DNA of 64,000 nt, from positions 22,196,001 to 22,260,000 of the forward strand of contig NC_135255.1 of the NCBI RefSeq assembly GCF_964204865.1, given 5' to 3'. The notes under the pieces were generated by a model. It ran no database searches. It worked only from the letters and a program-made list of their open reading frames with translations, and was not told the DNA's origin. Source of the stretch: Styela clava (Eukaryota). Below are positions 36,001 through 63,000 of this stretch, one piece after another; position 1 is the stretch's first letter, and every line of letters starts with the position of its first letter. Position numbers and translations under genes: made by a program.

Positions 36001-39000
36001 TGGACGCGTCCATATTTTACGACTTTTACTCTAAGAAAGAAATACTTTGTGAAAATGTCAGGAGAACACTAAACATCATAAGTCCCAAATTTTAATTATA
36101 AAGCCCTGTCAAGAACATTTAATATTCATATATAATATGAATGTATAACCCATGTATTTGAAAATCCAATTTGACCATTATACTTATGAGCTCTACCTGT
36201 ACCTGCTCGCCGTCCATGTTCTAGCCTCTGCATTAAACTGTTTTGATAGTTGTGAAGTAATTACGAATATGGGCGCAATCGCTTACAATTGTTAGGTTTA
36301 ACCTGCTAGTTATTTAGAACGACAAATTCAGGCTATTATGCTCGTAATTCAGATTCAATGGAGCCCTCAAAACAATCCGTTCCGCCAATTTAACTAACTT
36401 AACACAAATGGTTGATTATTAGAATGCATATGAATTGTATTTTTGTGTATGCGAGTAAGCCATGCTTTTGAGTAATGTTGTCAATATTGCCGCGAAAAAA
36501 ATATTGTCGCATTTTCGCCGAGTTGCGATCCGGGTCCAAGTTAACGTGGAATCGAATTTTGTGTGACTGATTTTTTATTTAGTCAAAGTTGTCGTTAAAT
36601 TAATTTACCACAAATGGCAGAATAAATTGACACTGTACAATGCGGATTTAAGACACCTCATCTGACATGTACTTTTGAGTGAGTGCTTGTGTATCTCTGT
36701 AAGCCGATATCAGGCTATAAGTCAATTTTATAATAATGTAGCACGAAACGATGCTTGTCCGTGGTGCCTCAACAAGCCTGAGACCGAGGTACGCCTATTT
36801 GCTGAATGCGATATAACAAATAAATTAATGGCAACAGCAATTTGGACATGGTCACACAAAAGCCCAAATAAAACACTACCTGCTACGAAAGATATAACAA
36901 TAAATTATAGATTTGGACAAAGTATAGAAAAGGACGAAGCGAACATATTAATCTTTTCATTGACAACAATGAAACAAGCTATATGGCAAGCAAGAAACAG
37001 GAAAATATTCGGCAACCACAAACTAAGCTCCAAGCAAACATTCAACAGCTTTAAAAGACAGATAATATGGCGATATAATGTTGAACAACAGAGGCGAAAG
37101 GGGGGTAATGACCTCAAGCTCGAAAGAATAATGAGGACAATTGAACTACTCGGGGAAAAACAACTACGAGACGTGGGAATAACGTAACGGAGACGATACC
37201 GCACAAGATGTATTAAAAACCCGAATTCGATTTGAAAATACGTATGTCAAAAATGTAAAAAAAAACGTAAAAGTTACCAAAGTGAACTAAAATATGTTAC
37301 TGTTAATCAACGTGACGTATTCCCCATGAATCGATACTTTTTCTCATACTGTAGAATTGCAGAAACTTTGCTAGTCATAGCAGACGACGATGTAACTTGT
37401 AGAATTGTATTTAAACGTTTTTACGTACTGTAAACAAACTCGCAAGCACCCCATTCAAACAACATAACGTAGTCTGCACACCGATATCGTATATAATTGA
37501 TTCCAGTGTCTAGATATTTTTCCCATACCGTAGTATTACCGAGCTACAACTAGGCTCGGAGTATAGATACGTATACATTGTGATTAGCATAGAGACATGT
37601 GTGCGTGGATCTAAACTGTAATTTGAAAATGATTCCCCATGCAATGTCGACAACCGAAATCCCAACTGTTTTTGGTCTAGTATTTTATATATGTTTTTCT
37701 TCTCCTTTCTCTATGCGGTAGTATTACCAAACTACAAAGAGGCCTCCCGTGTAGATACGTATATATTGTATATTGTATGGATATATGAGTGCATGAATCA
37801 AACCCCAGAACCAAAAGAGAATCCCATGTCCTTCCTTATACATGTGCGAAAATCACATGAGATTTCGAAATATACCACAAACGGTAGAATAGAAAAACGC
37901 GCTGGTATATAAGTCCAAATGACATAATACTACCTTGAATGGATCGTGGATATAATTCGGCTCATATAAGTAACCATAGAATCACGTAGTAGAAATAGTA
38001 AAAACTATCCTCAACCTTGACGTAACCATTGATGAATATTATAAACATCAACCCCGCCCCAAAGTATATCATGTATATTCACCTAACATGAGTCTAACCA
38101 AGAGTTGCAACCCGTAATCGATTCATATATATTAATCCCTAAAGCTTAAATGCTGAAAACTGTCACGAATTAACCATAAATGCCCAAAAATGCTGAAATG
38201 AACTATGTGCAAGTAACAGCCATATAACCCGGCTGGCACGAACGACGTATTAAACGACTTGTAACCAGAATCTCAAACTGTCTAAAAGGGCAGATAATTA
38301 CTGCGTATTACTGTTACACCACTGATACACAAAAAGCGAAGGCCTACAGTTGTAACTATAACACCTGGTTGTATGACTTGCAACCAGGCTTCAGAATATA
38401 CACCCAAGACAAATACGACCTCTGAGAAGTTCGACGAACCCAGTTAAGAAGCACACTCTAACGTAGAGTAATACTCAGTGTAAATCATTTAAAAGTATAT
38501 GTTCTTTTTCTTTGTTTTTTCATGTATATACTCTGTTTGTAAAACTAATAAATATCCAGGCTATAAGTCAATTTTATTTGTTACGTTTTGATATTCTCCT
38601 GCGAGAATGGCTGCTATGGTTGGTAGATTACTGCAATAAGGCTGTGCGTCAAGCGTTTAGGTGGTTTTCGTGTCTGAGGCGTGTTTTATTATGTCTCTGT
38701 TTCATTAATGGCCAATATTTTGTTCATCGAATTCGACCATCTGCGAACCCAAAAATGAATTCCTACAGCACAATCCCAAACAGATTGGGACACCACCACC
38801 ACGAAGACTAACAATAGCTGGTCATTAACCAGCTTGCAAATAATAAGCACTCACTCAAAAGTAAAGACGAATAAACGATTGCGTTGTTCTGCCATAAGCA
38901 ATTCATTTAAGCTACCATTTATGGTGAATACGATTATAAATTTGTTTTGCATTGGAATACCTCGAATGGCTGCAGAGATAAATGAGGAGGTGAGCTGTGA

Positions 39001-42000
39001 AAACCAACGGACTCTACTCTGCAGCCACGGGAAGTTCATTAATCCGCACGTAGCAACCACGTAGAAACTATCGTCTGAATCCATATGCTGTTTCAAGTGT
39101 GTGAATGACGGTGTGTAAGACGGCGATCTCAAACTTGGAATACGCACCCCATTTTATAATCAAATAATGTGTCCAGGGTGTTATCTTACATATACCGAAT
39201 CGACCGCCTCACAAGAAGATTGCTTTGTCACCTTCTCTGGTGCTGTTGCGTTTTCGTCCATGGACCGAGATGACTATAACACGCGAGTTTTGGCAACCGG
39301 TCGGCCCTGTTTCTATGAGGGCCAATACAATACATGGTAAATTAGATAAATTCCTTTGCAATTTTGAAAAATTCCATGGGAATCTTATACAATTAGATGT
39401 AAGGTTATTCCATACTGGCGTAACTTATCACCCAATTTAACTTTTATCCAATTCGGATGATTGCTAGACGCTAGTGAATTTGCGTAATATTTTCATCGCG
39501 CGAAACTGTTGCTTGCAATTGCAATAGAAAGGCTTTACAGCAGAAGCACATTATTCTGTTTCGTGATCGATGATCAAACGGCCCTGTTGAACATAAATTA
39601 AAGTCATTTTTCAAATTGCGGTGCGTTCTGATTAAGATTCCCATGGGTGCCAAGCTCAGCCAAGCAATATTTTTCGACTACATTTCAGCCTTGTATCATG
39701 CATGGTTCGATCAAATTGTGTTTGGTGCTTAAATTAGTATTGATTTTTGAAGTCGACGGAAGGTTGTATTGTTGGCAAACCATCAAAAACATTTGCAATA
39801 TGAGGCTCCAGCATTATGCATATATTAGTAATGATAGAAATAGTGCGATATCTAGTTATTAGAAATATAAATAAATATACGTTATTCATCCATGGAAGCG
39901 TTGTGAGGATCAGTAATTTATTTTTCCACTAATGTTGAAAATACGTAACGTACATATACGGTATGGAATTGAATAAGAATAGCATTTCAGGGTGGATAGG
40001 GACGAACAGTACTGTTGCGCTTAGATTATATTAGCAGAATCGAATATGATTCAGAAAAAACAGGTACCGCTGTATACGAGGTTTGGGGTGAATGGCAATG
40101 GGTTAATATATGAAAATTAATGCAGAAAAATAAAGCATTAAGACAATGTTAGATGTTGCTTGTCAGCCCAAAGTTGAATACTTTGGCAAGTAAATTGTTA
40201 TTCTTTGTGAAGAAGGAGTAAGAGCAAAGGCCAGCAAATTTCGACAACCCTTTTGAAAAAGGAGTTGGGGGGAGGGGCATTTTTGAGTAGTACCTATGAC
40301 ATCATCATTGTAGTAAGTTACTTGTGAGATATTCTGAAGCTTTTTATAACTAAATTCAGTTATATTTGAAGGCATGATCTGGCTAATTGCAAATATACTT
40401 GGAACGTTGATTATTCTAATTCAAATTGGAGTAGCCACAAATATTTGGTTAAATGTTAATTTTCTTTTTTTCTGTACTGGTTCTGAGTTCCAAGCTTTTA
40501 TTTGATAATTAAAACTAAGTTTGTATTTATTGATACTGAGTTATAGGACTCGTTACCATTTTTTGTTTAGGATTCCCTTTTCTATTAATTAACCAACCCT
40601 GTTGTTATCACAAATACTGGGTAGTATCAGTATTTGACTTTATCATATACGTTTCACGCTCGTTTTACGGTTTCATAGTCACATGGGCAAGCTTATTCAC
40701 TTCTGAACTCAATAGAGAAATAATTAAAACCGTATTTAATATGCTTTAGTTGTGAATTCTATTAATTCGTATCCCTCTGTTTGTTATTTCGTGGTCAATG
40801 TCTTGCATTTTCTTGCTCACAGATCTAAAAAATTGAAAGAAACACTTCAAGCAGTTGCGCAACTGGAGAAAAGTATGGAAGACCTGAGAACATGGTTGAA
40901 AGACGTTGAAGACGGCCTGACAGACCCGGTTGTATATCGAGATTCTAACGACAGAGAAATCGTGGAAAGACTCACCCAACAACAGGTTTGTTGCGTCATT
41001 ATGACTTTTCCTAGTGTAGTATTGTTCACACCAGGCAGGGGATTTGTCACTATAGCGTGACCGGTTTTAACATACAGTCATGATATCTTCACAGTTAGTA
41101 AAGCTATGCTGCTCATGATACTAGGATTTGTGAGTAACGTGTCTCGGATGTTAGTGAGGCACGATGGCCTAGTGGTTAAGGCGTTCGTAAGCGTCTTTGT
41201 TTGTATAAAACAATGGTTCCCAGCCATCCTTTTATGAATCGTGGCCCCTTTTGGCACTCATGGCCTCCTGTTTACATTCCATTGGTATTTTGATTGGTAG
41301 ATTCCAAATCCCAATATGTTCAAACAATTCATGCTCAACAAAGGGAAAATGTGTGAAACCGTGCTGTGAAATAACCATTTCAAGCAACGAAATTAGGTAA
41401 AATAAATAGTTTTCTTGTGAAGTATAAAGTTAAATCAGGTTTGCGCCTAGCATTGTGGCCGATAAAAAAAAATATTAGCGTATCAGATACCATGCCCACC
41501 CAATGGGTGATAAATTGGATAGGCAATGCCGAACCGGAACTTCCAAATAAAAGAAGCTCATTATGCATTATCAGATATTAGTGCTTATACAGAGTCTAGT
41601 TCGGGGCGAAATGCGTAAGTTAGCTCCGTATAAAAATTAAAGTTAAGTTTCTTGGATCGGAATACGAGTTCCTTATTTTCAAGTATTTGAATTAAATGTG
41701 AGAGTGTGGATAAAACTATACAGTTAGAATTCGTTTTTTACATGATTTTAGCCATCCGTTTTACCATACAGGTATACTATATGGACGCCGATGCTCGATA
41801 ACCAGTATTGGTTTTCCGCGTCTTCCCAAACCCTGAAATACAATTTCTTTATATATATTTTATTATAATTTGTATATCGTGTGTGCTTCTTCAGCTTGGC
41901 GAAAACATAAACTAATGATAACATACGGCATAACGTTATTGAAATGCTGTTTTGATCAGCTCCGTTGACAGCAAAGTTGAAAACCATCGCGCATCACAAA

Positions 42001-45000
42001 TTCGAAAAAATGAGTTACAGCAAGACGTGTTGTGAAACCCGATATCTCAGTCGCACCGCGCCCCGTTAAAACCTTTTTATCCACAACCACCATATTGTGG
42101 AGATTACTTTTGTTGTACCCCTATCTATTTGAATCGAACGTCACTATTCGTTGAGGGTGTCCGAGGTAGCCGGTCCAGCGCCGTTTTAATCCATAAACTT
42201 GACTAGAAGCTCAACTCAAGCTGATCGACTACATGCCAGACACCCTCTTTCTTTAGGAAAGTTTTTCCGGGGTCACGAGCAAAGGTCATGGGTGATTGCG
42301 AAATTTCGAATTGCCAAGTTAGACCGTAACAGCTAGCGAGTCTTGTGGGTCTGAAAAGCGATTCAAGCTACGATAAATTGCTATATATGGGCTCACAGAA
42401 AAATGCTTTTCCGCAGACTTTGTACATGGAAAACGTCCCATGGGATGGGACGGCACACATTTGTATTTCCTGTGTGACACGGAAACCGTATGATTTTCGG
42501 GGAAGTGATGATAAAACATTTCGTTATGGGCTTCGTGTTCATATATTTGAGCATAGCTCTCTTGTTAGTTCTAAAAAGAGAATATAAATTCAGCATTAAC
42601 AATATACTTCGTGAAATGGCTGATGGACATATGTATAATAGTTATAAATATAAAGTTAATAACTCCGTAAATTTTGTTGTTTTGCATGTCTCTATGTACA
42701 TGTAGTCCCATTTAGCAGACGCTAAACCCAAATTTTACAATTTTTATCGAATTTTATCCCATGGATGGGATGGGAATGGGACAGATAAAATATGTCCCAT
42801 GGACAAGCCTGCTTCTGCGGCATTGTTGACCCAATTTAATACACCCTGCGACTGCTAATAGAAGTTGTGTGCAAGGTATTTTATTCTTGGACAAATAACC
42901 TGCGATGTCAACTCGGTTGAGTCTAACGCTTCAATCAGTAGGCCGCCACTGGTGTGAATTAACCAATGACATGACTCATTTACATGTGCATACTCAATGG
43001 CCCCTATATCACTTCCTTGTGTGACGTCACATACGCAGTAAGACACCGGCAGACAATCTGTCGTTAGAGATGTTGCTAGATGCTAGATAGACTGATAAGT
43101 ACAGTGTATTTTTATTGTAATTTTGTGTGACTGAACGTGACTATTAAGGCTGAGTAGCAGTGCTCCCATTTAATTAATACTTTTATTTAAAGTAGAGGCT
43201 TAAACAGGAAAAAGTTCATAAAAGTAATCACTGTGATCTAATGCCACCATTGGCAAAAGATATATACCCAGTTCAGCAGGTTGGAATTTTCTGCTTTGCT
43301 GAATTCGAGAGTTGAGAGTCGGCAAGTCATGGTGGCGAAAATTGAGAGGATCAGCTGTAAAATAGGATACTATCCCCAGTGTTGGTGGTCCTTATCAAAT
43401 TGGGGAGATACAATTTTTCTTAGCACTATTTCTGCTGCAGTGGATGGAGACTGGCGGGGCAAATAATTAAAATATTTTCATTAATGAAATAACATGACGA
43501 TTGGGAAAAAATTGTTTGGATGTGATTTTATCCTTTTTAAATAATATTCAGTGGCTAAGGGGGAATCAATAGTCTTGCCGGACACTTGCACAAATATATT
43601 TCTGTAACGTTTCGTCTGACTTCAGTCAGACTTTTTCAGGCATACGTATTTCATTTATCAGCGAAAAAAAGGAATTGCATGTGCAGTGTGGATACTATAA
43701 AATATCAACCAACTTTGTGTATTTTTAACAGTATGTCCAACGTGTGACGAGTCAGATTTCCGCCAAATTCACTTAAAATTACTTCAAAAATTCGTAAATT
43801 TAAACGACTTTTTATGTTATACCCATACGTCCCGTCCAACGTAATCATTCAGTTGTTGCCAACAACATTCCTCCTTAACTATATATGCAGACATAACTCA
43901 AAATGAATGATCAACTAATCCACCAAGATTGGAAAAAAGCTGGAATAAATGACAGTTGCATGCGAGTGAATTTAGTGACATTTTCAACAGTCTTTGTGGC
44001 CGGTGTAAGTGAATAATGCGAACTGAGAGTTGGGAATTGAGCTTGGTTAATGCGGGGCCAAATATAGATTGATTGTAATTTGTAAGCTTCAGTTGTGATA
44101 CATACTCGATTATGCCTGATCAAACACTTATAAACGACATACAGAGGTAGTGTTTCATTTAACTGCTTGTGCCATATGGCTAATGGTTTTATTCGCAGTT
44201 TGTTTTATCATAATGCATGTAGACATCCTTTTGACTTCGTCGGGATATCATGCTCGTCGAATGAGTTTATAAAAATGATAGGATGTGAAAGGAAGATATG
44301 AGAATGAGGATTTTTAGCGAGTCGGTATGAAAGATTGTTATGTTGAACTATCATGGTGATTTACTGTACTAATCTGCCAAGATTCATTGCCAATCGTATT
44401 GTAGCAGAAATTACATTCTCAAGATAATAAGTTCAACATTTTGCAGTGTTTATAATTTTAAATCCAAGGAAAAGTGAGCTATTAAGTTATGTGTATCACG
44501 TGCTAAGTACTTTCGAGCCAACAGGGGCGATATATCTTCGTTTTACTAAAACATACCAATTCAAAAATGTATTGGTAGCGGATATTATATCGGAATCAAA
44601 TTACATATCTAGTTTAGACACGTCAGAAGTGTTATGATGACGAGAGTTTCTTTATGGTAAATTAAAATTCGGATGATTAACATAAGTACCTATATTTAAT
44701 CCTATATTTCGCTCCGAAAAGGGTAGCGAGAAAAGCCTAAAAATAATAAAAAGCACAAAGATGGTATAATAGAAAAGACTATAAGTTTAATTTTATTTCA
44801 ATTGTCATCCTATTGCATATAATGTGTGACTAATAGTGACTAATATCAAATATTCAACGACTTTATCGTGACCGTTCCGATTTTTATTTCGGATTGTCAG
44901 TCCAGCCTATATAAGCAAGTTTGACCATAGGCATGTTGGCCATAATGAGTTTCAAATCTACCAATTAAGATGAAATAATTGATTTGCAAATATGTCACAA

Positions 45001-48000
45001 GCCTTCAATCAAGTCGCAGCACAATGTCTCGAATCAATAGCCAGCTGTGTTGGCAACGTAATGTGGTGCAAGGTAAAGTTTATAGCAGTCATGAATGTTG
45101 GGAGAGCGGTTTGGTAAATAAATGAGAAACAATATTGGTATCATGTTCATAACAAAAAAATTCAAGGAAGGGTTAGTGTGACTGAATGTGTAAAATTTCG
45201 TTTCATGGTAGATTCAGATAAGGTTCGATTCGAGTAATTTTCTTCAATATCTGATAAACAACCTTATATTAATTCCATGGTAGCCGTCATGGACTTGGCA
45301 GAGTTTTATATTTATTATCTGATTTTAACCTTGCTTTGGGTTTCTTCAAATAGTAATACATACCTGGATTATTCGTAATCTTAGGTTTTATGGTGAAATA
45401 TCGAGACAAAGATTTATCAAAATTAGAGGCCTAGATTATTTTTGCTGCTACCTGTCCCTATTGGTAAAAATAGGATTTTCAAACCCAATGGTGTTCTTGT
45501 AGACATAAAAGATTAGTAAATATTATATGTATATATATGAGTTTAACTTATTTCGGGCATAATTAAAATATATATATTAGGACTATTATTGGTTTCACTA
45601 ACATGAAATGGCATTTACAACAAACGTCAATCCGTTAATTTCATAATGTGTCGAAATCTCAATAATGAGTTGTCGTATTGCTTCCTAATCGATATATTAT
45701 TACATTGCATTCTTAGTATATTGTGGTCGTTGCTTATTGGAAACCGTAAGTGGTATGTGATGGAAGGTATTGTGAATTTAGCAAGCTGATAATATAGTTT
45801 TGTAGCAATATTTTAAATAACTTTATCTGAATGTTCATTGAACTTTCACTTTAGAATTCTAAATATCGTAATTTGACGTAGTTAAATTCTGGAGATAGGT
45901 AAGAAAACGAGTATACGCAGTAGGTTTTATAAACGAGCTATGAGAGTGTGATTTTTGGGGCCTCCCGAGATGGCGCACAACCTGAACATAGTAGTTGTAC
46001 CAGGTTAGGTTTCAGGTTGTGCGCCATCTTGGTGCACATACTTCTGGAGGCCCATTTTTGGCTATGCTATGGTAGTCATCGTGCTTAATAAGTAGAGATG
46101 AATTAAAGCATTTTACATGGTGAAAGGCTGGTAATTTTTGTGACCGTATACTTGGTATTTAAAAAATGATTGCGTATAAAGTATTACCGGTAGCTCAAAT
46201 ATCGGAATCTTGTTGAAAAGTGTTGCCAGAAACATTAGCTAAGGCAAATTTATCGACCGTTCGAATCTATCATGATCGACATTATATCAAGTTTGACTCA
46301 ATGAGATTGATGGCGATAAATGGAACAAACGTCGAATTTAGTACGCGTTCGACCTTTATCTCTGAGGTAACCAAGTATTAAGCAAATCATTATAACTGTG
46401 TAACTTTTTATATGAGGTCTAGATCGATCGTCGCTATTTGTTCCAGTACATGCACGCTGTCCAAAGATGTTTTTTTCGAAAAAAGGTCGATCAATTAGCT
46501 TGTTTAGCTTCATTTATTGGTTTAAAGAAGTAACAGTCATCAAGTATTATCAGTTTTGATTAATTGCTGAGAAGTTGACTGACAGTGAACGAGTAAATGA
46601 GCACTACAATGAATTGAATAAAAAAAAAATTCCTGGTATGAATTTGCAAAAAATCGAGATAGCTTTATAAATTGAGCGAACATGTTCAAGTCTTTATTTT
46701 TTTTAATTTTTCCGAAAAGCTGGAGCTAGTTGTTTGTAGCTAATAATTCGTATGCAATATTGGATTCGTACAAGCTATTCGAGCTATTCCCAATCAATTT
46801 CAAACTATTGTCGATTTCCTAAATCCCAATTTGCAAAGCAATGGCACATAACTGTTGAGATAAAACACCGAACTGCTTAGTAACAAAACTTCACATCTTG
46901 AAGTGATTCTTATTCCGTTTGGTACACACGAACAAACACCAGTTTTGTTTATTTACATCGTTTTATTCGACGTATATTTGACATATTCATTTGGCCCCGA
47001 GCGTTGACTAACACATGTTGCAAAACTGAATGCAGAACTTTCGCATTGCCACTTGCTTTCTAGATGACTTCAATATTGATATTGGGAAATTGCTTATTTA
47101 AGTTGGAAATTAGACCAGGGGATTTGGGTCTGAACTAAAATTACGCATGACTATGCAGAAATATCAAATAGGCATGAAATATTATCGCGAGCTCTTTTAA
47201 TTGAGTATTACACTTTTCCACTGAACAAGACACTGATATGTGCGAGGCTTATTATAGTTTCTAGAAGGGTAAGATTTAGTCTTAGCATAATCTGTAAATA
47301 TCTTCAATCTGTTTAAATACAGCATGGTAATTTGTGCATCCAAGCAAACGGAAATACATGGATCGCGGAGATCATTCTTTGTACAGTTTCGAAACCAGCT
47401 GGCTACATGAGGTTTGGCAAGTCTTACTGTCAGTATCTTATTTATGGCGGAGTCGACGACGTGAAAGTAAAACAAAACATTTTAATTATTCATAAATTTG
47501 CGAATTCAAAATATTGCCCATCGGAACTCACCTTTGACCTTCGCAGTACAGCTGATCTTCTTGAATGATTTGATTATTGGGTAATAATAGCTGCTTGAGA
47601 ACGCTTCAAGGGCTTTTAAAACTTTCGCTGAGGCTTAAAATCAGTTAGCTAAGTGGGAGTAAAGCAACCATAATAAGAGTCGGAAATGTGGCTCCATCTT
47701 GACTACTAGGTTGAATTTTTTGCCAATTCAATATGTCGCATTTAAAATAATTTGCTATGCAGCAGCGAATTTAGGATTTTTGTGATTTTTGTTTTAGGTC
47801 TAAAATTCGTTTGCTCGTATTTGGAGTAAATTTGCCTTGACGATACCTCGCGTGTTGTTTTTTCATCACTTCGCCGAATAAGGATCAAAAAGTTATGAAA
47901 TATAACCAAGCATTACTCGCCTGAGGCATTGCGTATCAAAGCCTTAACGTAGCGTAGTTTGAACTAAAATTGGCGGGGTTTCACGCATGATTGCCGCTGC

Positions 48001-51000
48001 GGAACTCGAGTATTTTGTTAGTATTTCCTCAACGAGACGTCGATTGGCCTACATTTCATATTAAAAAAACATCATGCGACGACGACGGTCGTGTGTGAAT
48101 GTTAGTCGGAACGACCTTCAAATTAGAATAAGCTTTGTTGAAAGCGCGGTTAAATCAGTTCAGATTTCTCAGTAGTCGTAGTTTGAATAAATTGCTTCCA
48201 AAAAGCACTATTATTGGCTAATAAGCTGTAACAAGTACTGGGTTTCCGTGTTGATTAACTTGATTTTAAATTATAGCGGTTTAGAAACTTCGGCCCAAGT
48301 GAAATGTTAGGTGTCAGATGCATTAGCAAAAATTTAGGCAGAAAAGGTAAAGTTCTGAAAAGATAGGTGTCAGCTATAAGAAGGTAGAGAAATGCTCAAG
48401 TTGATGAGTTGCTATTCATAGATAAATTCCCTTCCCTTTTGTCAGCGATACTTTCATTTTTATTCCTTTAATTTTAGTGCATATACCTTCATATTTCATC
48501 GATCGAATGTTGCCCATTCTGCGTGTATGATTAGAGTGGCCCGATAATTTACACTATATAGCTGAGTGTGATAATTCCAAATACGTGTTAAAAAGATTGA
48601 ATCGAAACAGTAAACATTTAGCTAAGGATAGATCAAAATTTGGAGTAGGGATGGTCGCTAAATTAGTCGTTTCTAAGTTTTTCGATGATGTTGTCAAGAT
48701 TCTGGAATGTACATATGTTTTAGCGAGCGACTCATTTATTCCCTTAAGGTGGCGCCAAATGAACGTTTTCGTCCACAGCGAATTTAGTAGCGTGCTTAAA
48801 TACAGTCAAATTACCAAAATTTCAATATTATTTTGGGGTAATTATTCTAAATTGTATTTGTATGCATGTCAGATTGTACATCTAGCACAACGAGCATTAT
48901 ATAATTGCCCAAAAGCCCAAATTATTATCTGATTAACGAAAGCATTTATCTTTGCATGCAGGCTTTAGTAAATGATTCATATGCTTTCATAATTTTGCAT
49001 AACACTTATTTTTGAAAAAATTTCACATCTTTGTTTATATCAACAAAAGATCACCTGATCTTGGTTGACGGTAAAAGCATCGATATTTTGGGTAAAAAAA
49101 CACGCGATTGTAGTCTGGTATGTCTCATTCGTTGAGTCATGGCGTTCAGAAGCAACATTGTTATTCTATTTTGAGGTTCACAAAAATGCGACGATAAGCG
49201 ATAACTTGTAAGTACATTTGAACAACGGATTCAACAGCTATAGTTATTAGTTTCTTATATTTCGTGACACACAGTTTCAGGTCAGTATAGGGCGTTAAAT
49301 ACGAGCAGATAAACTTAGTGATAAAGGCATTTAAAATGTCAGTACAATATGTCAAAATTGTATAGATTTTATTGAGACATTATTTACCATAATTTTACTT
49401 GTTGGGGATACCTAGTTACCGTGATCATGTCGAAAGCAATTGTCAAACGTTTATCGCAACAGGTTTCATGCGTACAGCTTTGGCATTAACTTGTTGGCAT
49501 TCGAAAGGGCTATTGACTTATACATGAAGCATATAACCTGTTTGAACAAGCCTTCTTATAATTGGCGCCATTTTTGAAGTATTCGCGAGCATTTTCAAAT
49601 TCTCAATAGATTAGGTCAGAAATTCCCATTCACTTCCATTAATAGTTTGTATTCAAATCACCATTAAGTAACTATTCTGAATCTTTGTGAAAGAAGTTCA
49701 TGGGAGCCTGTGACACTGCCTTGGCATTTTTGAAATTCTTGTGGAAAAGATCCTTTGTTGAGTTGTAAAAATCGGTTCAAATTTACTCCTAAATAATCAC
49801 GCAAACGAATCAACAATACATTTTCGGCGCAATGTAGATTGGCGGATCGTGTAAAGGGAGAATAAATCACAGCGCGTGAACTTTTTGTAGCCTTTGTAAC
49901 TAACGTTTGGGTCTGAAAACAAGGTGCCCCGGTAGTATGTACACCAAGATGGCCCACAACCTGAACATAATATGTGTACCAGGTTAGGCTTCAGGTTGTG
50001 CGCCATCTTGGTTCGCATACTACGGGAGCGCCAAAAACAATATGGTAATCCAAAAATATATCACTGCGAAATAATTGATTTAGCATGCCAAGACTATCAG
50101 TTCAATGAACTGCTTGTCATCTCTCGAGTATTGCATTATATTACTACGTCATATATAGAAATCCCAAGTTGACGACAGACGAGACATGCGCGAGTGCTGG
50201 GTGGTGTCGAATTTCATTTTGGCCGACTTTTCTTAAATGTGTGGTTTCACATACTGTAGTATTATAAAGAACAAACTTAATAATGTGCGCCTGGAAATAG
50301 CAATATGCATCTGCTGAGCAGATGTAGCGAAGCTTTTGTTTGCAAAGAAGTACAGTAGTGCGGATATATTTAAACACCATCCCATGTATAATAGAGACTT
50401 TTTGAAAAATATGGCCAAGCAACTAAAATTACATTGTAATGGCAAGATATAACTATTACCGATCACGCACTCCAGGTATGGCTGTTCGCGCGTCTCTATG
50501 CAAATGCCGTAAATAATGAATTTCGTAGCTATAGCACACTAACTGTTGTTGCAATGTGCATTTCCCGTGTCATGATTTGTGTGATTTAAATAAATTTTGT
50601 TAGCATACTATCTTAAATGCGCGACTTCGCAGCAAATCATGATTTGTGTTAAAACATCCAAGATATATATACAATGGTAGATATACAATCATAGACATCA
50701 ATTTGCGCCTAAAATTCTGTACATTAATATTTTTAAAACGTTGAATAGTATGATATAAAAACAAGTTTGAAATTGTTCGTTTCCATTTTCAAAGGAACCC
50801 ATGTTAGGCATTGGTTTTGTATATTTATGTCGAAAAAGAGATGTTGTTTAGCCCGGTGTATCTAGAGAAATTGGACTCTTATATCGATTGTTTGGATCAC
50901 GCTGCGGAACTTGCATATCAACATGCTGTGGAAATAGGATTGGATGCTGAAGACTCCCCAGACTTTACTCCAATTTGTACGAAATGTATGAAAAGACGGA

Positions 51001-54000
51001 GATTAGATTTTGATAAATCACTATCGGGGATACAAGATGATGTTTTCGGGCGAAATAACGAATCTAAGGGGACAAGTGAAGTTGATAATTCGTCGAGCTA
51101 TCAGAATGAAAGCGCTTTATCATCCGCGAATTCATCTCGATTATCAGTGTCGTCTTCCAACCTGACTAATCCGTATGACGTCACAAAACCTATTGGACGT
51201 ACTGGAAGTTTGAAACGAGACAAAAATAAGGTTGATAGTACGTTTATGTCGGTGATGCTTAAGACATTAGTAACGCTGAATTCCTCGTCGGAATCGCTAA
51301 ATGCCGCTGACTCAAGGCTCAACCGAGGCATGAATGAAAATTTACGGTCAAAGAAGAAGGCTTACTTACAGCGAAGACATACTACAATATTAGACGAAAA
51401 TGCTTTAATGCTGTCTGCTAACGCTAATGCAGCTGTCAGCAGCAGAAAAACCGACACACAGGCGGGAATAGTAAACAGTGCGGTCAGCGACGTATCCGAG
51501 AAAAAGGAAGACGCCTCCGCTGTGTTGCGTTCTAAAGTCACGCGGAAACCTAGGCCGTATAGTTACCCTAATCAGCGTTATCTACAAAGACAGGCGACAG
51601 CGCCAAATCTACAAGATAACAAAAACAATTTGTCGCGTGTAAGTGCGAAAGGCAGACGCGACCTTCAAGCGAAAAAAGGAAAAGCTGTCTTATCAGGAGA
51701 AAATATGGATAACGCTGGGTGTTCGAAAGTTATAAGGGACAGCCATGACAAATCACACAGCAGTGACGAAAAATTGAGCAAGAGCAAACCTATCAATATC
51801 AAAGTTGGTGCAACTGACACTGAGGGAAAAGCCCATCATATGTACTACAGTCTATCACCAGCAATGTTAGATGCACCGTTAAGAGTTGAGGATCTCGGAT
51901 CATCAGAAAGGGTTGCCGGCGATATAAATATTACCAAAGAAGGCAGGTTGAGTATGGATGATTTAAAGACTGCTGGAGAAGAATCGATTACTTCTCACGA
52001 TTCCAGCTTTTCGTCAAATCCTGAATACTTTTCAGTCATTTCAAAAAGAAAGAAAAGGAGACAAACGAAACTCGGTGCAGACAAATTAGACACCGGATTT
52101 GGAAGTCATTCTCTTCCCGCCAACATTTCAAACGCCACCGATATGGCTATTATCTTGAGTAACAAAAATAGCACGAGGAAAGCGGGAGATGAAGCCCAGA
52201 CTATCGACCTGCAGAGCCGGCTTGATGGTCATTCTTTCAGTCATTCATTGGATGATCTGTCACGCAGTCGGAAAAATATATCTAAGTGCAGACAATTTAA
52301 GGATGAAAATTTGTTCAACGAAACAGATGATACATTAGATGAGGGAAATACATCATATCTTCACGGGGACGGATTACTATACACGAGTAGTTTTGGAATA
52401 GGAGATCATTCGTGGTGCACTAACCTGGCTGAAAGTGATTTAGTAACAGACGGATACTGTAAATGCAGCTTTTGTAACCACGATATGATTTTTACTCCGA
52501 TGAAGAGCGAGACCCACGTCGTCCCACCCAAGACTGACGCATACGAAAAAGATTTTTCATCTATCCACGAGGAATTGCTACAGCTACGAAGTTTCAGCAC
52601 CAGTGACAATTCAGTTACGTCATTCAGAACAATACGTCACGAACCAAAGTCCGATTTGCAAACAGATCATTTCCCTTACCCGCGCCTACCTAAGGAATTT
52701 ATGACGTCACATTTAGAGGACAGTATGGCGTCACAATTGGATATATCAATGGATGTAGCTTGCGGTGATGACGAAAATTCATCAGTTCGATCTAGTCCCG
52801 TACAAAAGGTATCACAAACAAGTCTGTTAATATCACCTCTAATTATCCGACCTCGATTGCTCTGGATATGGCTGTCCAGACATTAGGCCGGACTAGTATA
52901 ATTGCAACAAAGTAAATGCTTAGTAAATATGTGCCAAATAGCACATATTTCGATTCGGAAACTCGCGCTTAAAAAGCAGATCGCTAGTGTTTTATACGTT
53001 TCGTTCTCATACGCGATTGGCTGGCATTTGGATGTTCCGATAGTACAATCTTATTTATACAATTTGGTTCAGGTAAAGCATTTGCATAAAAAACTAACTC
53101 GTTGTTTAATTTTCAGGCTCTCCAACGAGACATCGAGAAGCACAGTTCAGGAGTAGCATCAGTGCTGAATCTATGCGAAGTTCTACTTCACGACGGTGAT
53201 GCTTGTTCCAATGAATCAGAGAAAGATTCCATCGAACAAGCTACGAATAGTCTTGACAGAAGATGGAGAAATATTTGTTCGTTGTCAATGGAAAGAAAAT
53301 TGAAGTGAGTATTATAAACACGTTCTATCAGCTTTAAAAATTTTCAATTTGCTGATACCGATATATACCGATATGTACCAGGTTAGGCCATAAGTTTATT
53401 CCGATTTTCTTTTATTTTAGTCTATTACGAGTTCGAGGACCGTCTGTATTAGCCAAGTGAATATTCCCCTGCTCATCATTCATATCGGGCGAGTGGCCCG
53501 GACCGATTTTTGATTTCAGTTACTTTACACGATTCGATGTAAAATAGCCGAACTTTATTTTGGTACATGTACTTATGGAGCAACTAACAAAAACAAACAA
53601 CCTGGCAGAAATTCCTGCTCCTATTTAAATTGCAATTTCGGACCCCCTTTTACCTATGCGGGGGATGATATGGGGACACACAAAATTTACACGCACGCTT
53701 ACTGGAATAAAACCCTACCATGATATGAGACAAACGTTTCGATATTTGAACGTAAAAAAATAAGACGCAACCAATTGTTATATTTTTTGTACCAAAATGC
53801 GTCCAGCTTGCATAGTATAGCAATTTTAGAAAAATTCTGATCTCCCCGAATGTGCGGTCTTCTTGCATCGAGATTTGCCTTTGTAAATCTTTTTGCATTC
53901 CTATTCCACTTGACTAGTTACGCTTTCGCCGATCTTTACCCATTTGTTGCCAAACAAAAGACTTATAAACACAATCGAACGCTTTCAAAATTGTCTGCAA

Positions 54001-60000: not shown

Positions 60001-63000
60001 TGCAATACACTTATTTTATTTTTCAGAACGAGCCTCCACCTCTTGATTCATCCTTGTTTGAAGATACAGAACTCGCACAAATGAGTTGGTGGGAAAATTA
60101 TATCAGTGGAACAAGTGAGTAACGTCTTAGAGATGATTAGAATGACAAATACTGACTGAAAGTAACCATTACAAATGCATTATAAACATAAACTGTCTGC
60201 TCTAGTGACCTCTAATTATTAACGCAATTTAGTCATAACAGACTTTCAAAAATACTGTGGTATCATCTGAATGTAAACAAACAAACAAATGATTAAATGT
60301 GATTACTGTCAACATATTTTGTAGGTTCTTCCAGGAACAGCAGCCCTTCTTTACAGTCGCCAGACCATGACCGCTTCCTAGCAACACCAAGAAGTCAAGG
60401 AAGTGATAGAAGGTCAGCTACAAGTCACAGCGGAAGGTATAATTGTGGTTATTTTTCTTCATAGATTATAGGAAAATATTTTAGCGTATGGGTTGGGTTT
60501 CAAAATAGTCACAAGCAGCCGTTTTTTTATTCTAGCCCAACCAACAAGATATAAATATTGAGGAAGTACATTTATGCACAAACAGATCTCAAGCAGCCGT
60601 TTGTTTGAAATACAAAAACCCATATTTTAAAATTTTGTTTATTCTGCCATATAAAATAACATTAATGGGGCCCATAACTTATGAAGCAAGAACTATTGTT
60701 TGCTAACGATTTGTTTTCCTTTCCAGAGCTACACCTGAGAGTCTTGAGTGGGACTTATACGATATCAGCCAGTCCGAGCTAGAAACAAAAGATGCGGGTG
60801 CACTAACAGACGATGGTTCAATACCGGGTGAATTTTTTTATTTGTTTCTGAATTACATATGAAATCGGAATTCTCGATTTTTCTCATAAGCATACTTTGG
60901 GTTACTGTTATATTTCTAATTCATATTCAGCGCTCCAGAAGTGTGTGTGCCAATATGGAGGTAACTGATTTTGTTCACCTACTTTACATCAAGTTGTGTA
61001 AAGGGACTGGAGCATATCGGCAGGGGGTATATTCACTTGGTCGAACTCGTAATAGAACTAAAATAAGGAAAATTGGATAAAATCATGGACTAACCTTAAC
61101 CTGGTACACACACTATGGGAGTGCCAAATATTCAACAAACAAATTTACGAAATCATTGCTAATTTATAAAAATTCCTATTTTTTGTTTGACAGCATAATA
61201 CTTGAAATGACAAATTTTCAAAAGTAAAATAGTTCAATTAACACAAATGAGTTTTTTTTTATTGATTATTAAAAATAAATTACCAGTTTTGAAGGCATGT
61301 CCTTGCTTCTTGTATATGATCTAAATATAAATTCCATATTGAGTAAAACATTTATATCCCTTTTATATTTTCAGAAATTTCACCCTTTGAAACAGCAAGT
61401 GACGATATTCCACTTCTTCATGTATCAAGAGACAGTACTGGTACAAGACAGGTATGTATTATTTTCTATAACCTCATGATAACCACTTGATTCCGTTAAT
61501 GCATTATACCAAGTTTTAATGATATGCGTTACACCACAAATTACCCAAGTCCAATTACAACCATATGTGTTTTAATAATTTGTAAGAAAATTGCCCAATT
61601 TGCACCCATGCAAGATGGTTAACAAATATATAAAACCATGCCCATGAAACGATTGACTGGATAGCTGACCGAAAACATCACATGCACTAGACCTAAAAGA
61701 ATACCAAGCTTTGCCAAATTATTGGTGTACTTTCCCCTGGATTATTTTTAGTTTTATATAAAGTACAATAATGACAGAAAAATTAAAATTCAACCATGAT
61801 ATAATTTCATTGCCGGTTTTTTATTCAACAAAATAACTCCATTACAAATTTTTTCTAATATCCCAGAGTAACATAAGCAGAAGAAGTCATGATGTTTCAG
61901 TATCTCATGAACCTGCTGATCTGTCACCTGCAAAAAAGCTTCGTACTTCGCAGGATGAAATGACCCAACAATTCATGAATGACCTCATAGCAACCTTAGC
62001 ATGGCTAGATGCAACTACAAAGGTCACGAACCAGGAAATGAAAAAATCAGAATCAAAATTTGACAAAACAATAAGCGACCTTGATCAACAATCTATAGAG
62101 TTGAAGGTATGTATAGAAGTAAAGTGATAGAATAAATATTTGATTTCGATAGAATTTACAAATACAGTGATTTTTGTAAAAGGAAACTTACTAGTTTGGA
62201 TTTTTTAAATTCATTTCACAGTAAAAGAAAACATAAACTAAGGTGTGATTATTTAAAATGAGCACCATCATATCATTTCTATTAAATTTTATTTTTAGAG
62301 TTTACAAGCTTCCATTGAACAAAGAAAAGCGATTGTTTTGTCAATAAATCTTGTGTCATCATCCTACTCTGGTAATTCTGATGTCACAATAAAACTGTCA
62401 AGCATGAATAACCATTGGGAATCGCTACAACAAAAATCGATGGATTGGAACAAAAGCCTACAAGAAAGCTTATCGAATTCTCAGGTAAAATACAAGTTTG
62501 CCAGAACAGAATAGATTTTTGTTTCAACTAAGAGGCTTTGGTCCATTGTGAGGCATAACGTACTACCAAGTTTATGATTCTGGAGCATTAAACTGGTAAA
62601 ATAACTATTTCATCTGATCTGGACTGGTAACCAAACGGCGCTTCACCTCATGATTGCATTCATATCAACTTTCCTCTTCCACAGGATAAACCGGAAAAAT
62701 CTGATATCTTAGATTGGTAGATACACTACGTAAAAACTGCAGTAATTTTGATTATAGATTAAAATGAACTTTTCCAAATGTAGTTACCGGTACTTCTTTT
62801 ATAATTTCTCCAGCAACTTTGCTGATATAACTCCATACTCTGAAATATAAATTACCTTTAACTTCAATGAACATATATTTTTCAGGAATTTCAATCAGCG
62901 CTTACTGAATTGTCAGCATGGGTTGGTTTACAAAACCATCACCGTGACGACATGAACAAGATTCAGCAAAAAGAAAATGCTGATTCATCGCCAACATCAA

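Follow-up and report, generated by a model that had tools for sequence, protein, structure and literature searches.

In vertebrates, the short KASH isoforms of SYNE1 and SYNE2, including nesprin-1-alpha-2 and nesprin-2 alpha, beta, and epsilon, are produced from internal promoters (PMC3981789, PMC4924313). Human nesprin-1-alpha-2 carries a unique N-terminus of 31 aa, which is encoded by a unique first exon located before exon 131 (PMC4924313). Here, we analyzed a stretch of 64,000 nt from the tunicate Styela clava (hereafter the window, whose positions are used throughout), which lies within a nesprin-like KASH gene. A 12-kb intron of this gene contains a long open reading frame (ORF) on the + strand, at 50841-52808. 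We put the probability at about 0.6 that this ORF is the first coding exon of a short nesprin-like KASH isoform. As in the vertebrate short isoforms, the proposed intronic first exon is located near the 3' end of the gene and would join the common C-terminal spectrin repeats and the KASH domain (PMC3981789, PMC4924313), and the common part amounts to several hundred residues. Unlike the 31 aa of nesprin-1-alpha-2, however, the unique part in Styela clava would span 656 aa, ~20 times more, with conserved blocks of its own. With an ATG of its own and a reading frame that matches the common exon at 53117, the candidate exon shows the arrangement expected of a short nesprin made from an internal promoter.

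In the proposed mechanism, transcription would begin within the 12-kb intron; alternatively, the mRNA would receive a spliced leader at an acceptor shortly before the ATG. ATG 50841 would serve as the start codon, and splicing of the donor at 52808 to the acceptor at 53117 would keep the frame through the last spectrin repeats, the LEWD motif, and the KASH domain. The product, estimated at ~1,400-1,500 aa from exon-length sums alone, would reside in the outer nuclear membrane and have the mostly disordered 656-aa head as its cytoplasmic end. We infer the promoter, the 5' end, the 52808-53117 junction, the KASH-bearing product, and any function of the protein from the DNA sequence.

The stop-free frame extends from 50808 to 52883 (692 codons) and is closed by TAG 50805-50807 on the 5' side and by the stop at 52884-52886 on the 3' side. 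From ATG 50841 to base 52808 it comprises 1968 nt, or 656 codons, and it stays open for another 25 codons beyond the donor up to its own stop. The runner-up among all six frames of the window has 173 codons, and the longest stop-free frame in 50 shuffles of the window reaches at most 196 codons; chance is therefore rejected as the source of the frame. The encoded protein contains 14.5% S, 9% D, 8.7% L, and 7.5% K. The initial annotation, which was made from the letters of the window, had called it S/D/K/N-rich and of low complexity. This is roughly right for the composition, but the underlying DNA is not of the simple-repeat kind and no tandem repeats were found in the ORF.

The splice phases of the locus are established. 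The host intron runs for 12,131 nt from 40985 to 53117 and contains the ORF. The upstream nesprin exon ends with CAG/GTTTGT at 40985 (slashes mark splice junctions), the donor of the ORF reads AAG/GTATCA at 52808/52809, and the acceptor TTTTCAG/GCT at 53116/53117 leaves a proposed intron of 308 nt (52809-53116, +) between the head exon and the common nesprin exon. The exon end at 40985, the ORF donor at 52808, and the exon starting at 53117 are all in phase 0. Since the exon that follows 53117-53304 begins in phase 2, 53117 is the sole nearby in-frame partner for the donor. The first description of the locus had placed the ATG at 50841, the in-frame TAG at 50805, and the donor AAG/GTATCA at 52808, with a 308-bp gap and a phase-0 match to 53117, and every one of these positions proved exact.

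The coding nature and the conservation of the ORF are established by its homologues. A phmmer search against 1.84 billion (1.84e9) representative proteins recovered exactly two relatives, P0001 (635 aa, E 1.5e-65) and P0002 (631 aa, E 7.6e-65). Both are unnamed ORFs called on Logan contigs, which measure 2,883 and 6,312 bp. Over the full alignment, each shares 39% identity with the window protein, and they are 30% identical to one another. Querying with P0002 recovered nothing beyond P0002 itself and P0001, and no related loci were found in metagenome contigs. Neither the ORF nor P0001 or P0002 has a match in Pfam. The PDB profile search with the ORF gave noise only (E > 0.6), and in the ESM Atlas the best score was 0.81 for the whole protein, with no usable match for residues 500-656. 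At 39% identity, the frame has thus stayed open across three species for more than 630 codons, which is strong evidence for purifying selection on the encoded protein. The ORF is almost certainly a real conserved coding exon.

The three-way alignment has ~110 invariant columns, which are arranged in blocks. The window protein, P0001, and P0002 share an N-terminal block, MFSPxYFEKLDxYIE ... TPICSKCLKRRKLDFD, a block with VDSTFMSxMLKTLVTLNS ... RRHTTIL ... NANAAVS, the block HMYYSLSPAMLDSPLKVEDL, and the block GDGLLYTSSFGIGDHxW ... DGYCKCSFCNHD. In addition, the three-sequence alignment contains the block HFPYPRLxxEFMTSH and a conserved RxxSxP site, which reads RPYSYP at residues 238-243 of the window protein and RPLSYP or RRMSFP in the homologues.

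These results also bear on the origin of the frame. A transposon or viral remnant, or a frame that is open by chance, might be suspected from the repeat-like ORFs in the intronic surroundings, such as 36666-37184. However, the sequence is present in a single copy in the 377-Mb genome assembly, neither the ORF nor its homologues match Pfam, there are no tandem repeats, the length of the frame lies far above that of the shuffles, and three species at 39% identity have kept it open over >630 codons. This origin is hardly credible, and its transposon, viral, and chance versions are effectively refuted by the copy number, the shuffles, and the phmmer homologues. The initial annotation had stated that lack of conservation, or a match to a transposon or viral protein, would speak against its idea; two homologues, a single genomic copy, and no Pfam match were found instead.

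The host is a nesprin-like KASH gene because it encodes a KASH domain, a LEWD motif, and nesprin-type spectrin matches. The KASH domain (PF10541) is on the same strand and scores 65.5 bits against a cut-off of 23. It is located at G000:C6:22263930-22264100, equivalent to window positions 67930-68100 and thus 3.9 kb beyond the window end, and its frame ends with TYTNGPPPV and a stop. The LEWD (W-acidic) motif, PESLEWDLYD, lies at 60743-60754 (+) in the exon-like frame of a downstream common exon. Its presence, and that of the KASH domain, bear out the earlier expectation of LEWD and presumably KASH downstream of the ORF. Exon-like + frames with spectrin-repeat character span the entire window. 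In exon-by-exon Pfam searches the best match to PF25034 (Spectrin_SYNE1) reaches 30.7 bits (E 3e-7), short of the curated cut-off of 35, and the matches to PF00435 likewise stay below theirs. Such scores are expected because the exons hold half-repeats. The N-terminal calponin-homology domains of a giant isoform would be encoded upstream of the window.

The two exons that flank the intron illustrate this. The common nesprin exon at 53117-53304 (+), which starts with ALQRDIEK and ends with AA/GTGAGT, encodes helices B-C, the second half of a spectrin repeat. It matches positions 46-100 of the 105 positions of the Pfam Spectrin profile (E 0.0019, below the cut-off) and residues 50-105 of repeat 1 of dystrophin/utrophin (E ~0.09). 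The upstream nesprin exon of the giant isoform, at 40816-40985 (+), encodes the first half of the same repeat and ends in phase 0. It carries the helix-A signature LRTWLKDVEDGL, a weak within-gene match (E 0.018), and a PDB search with this exon gave noise only. The 40985/53117 junction therefore appears to fall inside one spectrin repeat, so that an insert of 667 aa would split the repeat. This is supportive of a first exon, but not conclusive.

If the ORF were used internally, it would have to be entered at 50807/50808, where the in-frame TAG at 50805-50807 (+) is also the only acceptor that allows in-frame internal use. The pyrimidine fraction upstream of AG 50807 is 0.50; this ranks at the 47th percentile among the AGs of the whole window, so that the tract looks random. 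In contrast, a strong acceptor-like site with a pyrimidine tract and AG 50793-50794 is located at 50775-50794 (+), 13 nt upstream of AG 50807. Its pyrimidine fraction of 0.72 corresponds to the 95th percentile and equals that of the bona fide acceptor at 53116. This site is out of frame with the ORF, and entry there leads to a stop after 23 codons; for that reason AG 50794 would fit only a cis-acceptor in the 5' untranslated region (5'-UTR) or the acceptor of a trans-spliced leader. The two delimited neighbor exons are 170 nt (40816-40985) and 188 nt (53117-53304) long, and the other exon-like + frames in the window reach at most ~360 nt, versus ~2 kb for the candidate exon. Under the exon-definition model, a length of 2 kb is a much better fit for a first exon than for an internal exon.

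A cassette exon of the giant nesprin has to be weighed against these observations. AG 50806-50807 would give an exon of exactly 2001 nt (50808-52808), in phase 0 at both ends and flanked by exons whose borders at 40985 and 53117 are in phase 0 as well. It would add a disordered insert of 667 aa, and the upstream TAG would then be merely part of a TAG acceptor. However, this acceptor lacks a pyrimidine tract and follows the strong out-of-frame AG by 13 nt, the insert would interrupt a spectrin repeat at profile position ~45 of 105, the exon would be ~10 times as long as its delimited neighbors and ~6 times as long as any other exon-like + frame, and the two homologues share a conserved start Met. 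We consider a cassette exon very unlikely. Alternatively, splicing might join 40985 to 50808, with translation continuing up to the stop at 52884, which would make the ORF an alternative terminal exon of a nesprin that lacks KASH. The frame is indeed open for the 25 codons past the donor up to its own stop, and KASH-less nesprin isoforms are known in vertebrates, which gives this arrangement a precedent. It depends on the same weak acceptor as the cassette, though, there is no poly(A) signal downstream, and the tail past the donor is not conserved whereas the start Met is. A terminal exon is accordingly more than doubtful, with little probability left to it. In general, the split repeat, the poor in-frame acceptor, the 2-kb length, and the conserved start Met make an internal use of the ORF exon in the giant isoform unlikely.

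The two ends of the homology are more consistent with a first coding exon. The homologues (E ~1e-65) align with the candidate exon from residue 1-2 to the last residue before the donor. Both begin at a Met aligned with ATG 50841, and the homology starts from the very next residues. For an internal exon, a common start of separately called ORFs at a single conserved Met would not be expected, and we read the shared Met as a conserved initiator; by our own estimate, the likelihood ratio against an internal exon is perhaps 10:1. At the other end, the similarity stops in all three sequences where a K or Q is followed by V, at a position where the final codon is compatible with an AG ending and is followed by GTN, as in AAG/GTA at the donor of the window. 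The tails past this position are unrelated among the three sequences and run into stops after 25, 9, and 15 codons. These lengths are about those expected of random AT-rich intron sequence, which supports a conserved donor at 52808.

The sequence downstream of the donor points in the same direction. Neither AATAAA nor ATTAAA was found between 52809 and 53500, and a same-strand transcript should therefore continue into the nesprin exons. The nearest strong same-strand acceptor after the donor at 52808 is the nesprin acceptor, 308 nt away. Taken with the phase, these features favor the 52808-53117 junction, short of proof. The ORF might instead form an independent same-strand gene nested in the nesprin intron or, as a first exon, be spliced to a site other than 53117; in either case its product would not be a KASH protein. 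The ORFs called as P0001 and P0002 stand alone, have a similar length, and contain no nesprin sequence, the ORF in the window has both its own ATG and its own stop, and a phase match with 53117 arises by accident in one case out of three. On the other hand, in three species the similarity ends exactly at a GT-compatible position with unrelated tails beyond it, the 700 nt downstream lack a canonical poly(A) signal, the closest strong acceptor on this strand is that of nesprin, and a same-strand terminator inside the intron would truncate the giant transcript as well. We regard a nested gene or a different splice partner as unlikely.

Splicing from the ORF into the nesprin exons is thus the reading that we prefer, but several observations weigh against it. 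P0001 and P0002 read through the donor position, so that they provide evidence of conservation and not of splicing. The donor sequence GTATCA is only moderately good. The placement of the intron within a spectrin repeat comes from sub-threshold matches (E 0.002-0.09), and no annotated protein in the searched libraries couples such a head to nesprin. In addition, two out-of-frame upstream ATGs, 50801 and 50827 (50801-50829, +), have weak context and would be part of the leader if the 5' end is located upstream of them. They lie within 40 nt of ATG 50841, which has a G at -3 and thus the better context. These ATGs speak mildly against the proposed start, or may hint at translational control.

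How a transcript might begin at the ORF can be approached from the sequence around its start. A TATAAAA sequence at 50754-50760 (+) precedes the ATG by 87 nt and might be an element of a core promoter, although in DNA of 35% GC it is weak evidence. Elsewhere in the genome, at least 70 copies of ATTCTATTTGCATAAG are arrayed at G000:C3:24847565-24961794 on the minus strand, with a spacing of ~0.5-1.9 kb. ATTCTATTTGCATAAG is presumably one base off the 16-mer of the ascidian spliced leader, but the argument lies in the array pattern. The array is most likely the cluster of spliced-leader RNA genes of this tunicate. This pattern supports the use of spliced-leader trans-splicing in the species and makes a trans-splice acceptor upstream of ATG 50841 plausible, and AG 50794, or the AGs at 50807, 50838, and 50840, could serve as one. 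An extended version of this idea is that spliced-leader trans-splicing at 50794 on the giant pre-mRNA would switch the output, without any promoter of its own, from the giant actin-binding linker to a KASH adaptor with a lineage-specific, zinc-binding (CxxC, CxCxxCxH), RxxSxP-bearing, and otherwise disordered head. We hold this full combination to be quite improbable.

We also profiled the observed/expected ratio of CpG over the window and the adjoining window-equivalent positions 64001-74000. The profile is a sharp mosaic: CpG is depleted from 1 to 34 kb (0.26-0.76) and again from 60 to 66 kb (~0.55), and the ratio exceeds 1.1 past the gene end. Between the two depleted stretches, a CpG-undepleted domain of ~26 kb (34001-60000, observed/expected 0.86-1.34) lies inside the gene and contains the ORF; outside 34-60 kb, this level is seen only beyond the gene end. 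For invertebrate chordates with mosaic methylation, such a profile suggests that 34-60 kb is an unmethylated island in a methylated gene body. Such a pattern is compatible with internal regulatory regions or promoters, although the domain is broad and the common exons are inside it too.

Most of the predicted head protein is disordered, but it also contains conserved blocks and clusters of Cys. With the three-sequence alignment as input, AlphaFold2 gives a mean predicted local distance difference test (pLDDT) score of 38, and 546 of the 656 residues score below 50, in keeping with the disorder that had been proposed for this N-terminus. Helices are predicted at residues 5-32 (pLDDT 70-82) and 133-200, together with a small hairpin over the CKCSFCNHD cluster. 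Five Cys and one His are invariant in the alignment (CxxC and CxCxxCxH clusters) and could hold zinc. The short conserved motifs also include a basic KRRK patch. The RxxSxP site, which we take to fit the mode-1 14-3-3 and basophilic-kinase consensus, is a possible site for either. In the most likely working model, the head would act as a flexible adaptor on an outer-nuclear-membrane anchor and bind its partners through the short conserved motifs.

Two other sequence features of the region were recorded. Within the ORF, a consensus-like donor, CGT/GTAAGTG, is present at 51636-51645 with its break at 51639, in phase 0. If used, it would yield a head of 266 aa in frame with the exon at 53117. It is located in a non-conserved, gapped region of the alignment, and we take it as a chance occurrence. 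The second-longest open frame of the window, 173 codons at 36666-37184 (+), lies in the preceding 7-kb intron. Its product is repeat-like and rich in Cys and Trp, has no match in Pfam, and may be a degraded mobile-element fragment.

Beyond the vertebrate short nesprins, KASH adaptors of the Klarsicht, UNC-83, nesprin-4, and KASH5 type have large N-terminal regions without spectrin repeats or CH domains and are encoded by separate genes. The initial annotation had likened the proposed protein to Klarsicht-type motor adaptors. The likeness stands as an analogy of general architecture, namely a large non-spectrin, non-CH cytoplasmic N-terminus on a KASH anchor. It does not extend to the sequence: in the 1.84e9 proteins searched with phmmer and in Pfam, PDB, and the ESM Atlas, the head shows no similarity to known KASH adaptors. 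Unlike those adaptors, moreover, this head would arise from within the giant nesprin locus.

Leaving aside the two unnamed ORF relatives, the large conserved coding exon described here is contained in no protein of the searched collections, annotated proteins included. Short nesprin isoforms determine the partners to which the nucleus is coupled in a given cell type. If our reading is true, the conserved short motifs of the head offer themselves for tests of such partners, and a chordate lineage would have built a new KASH protein of the cargo or adaptor type by the birth of an exon within a giant gene, with no need for a separate gene.

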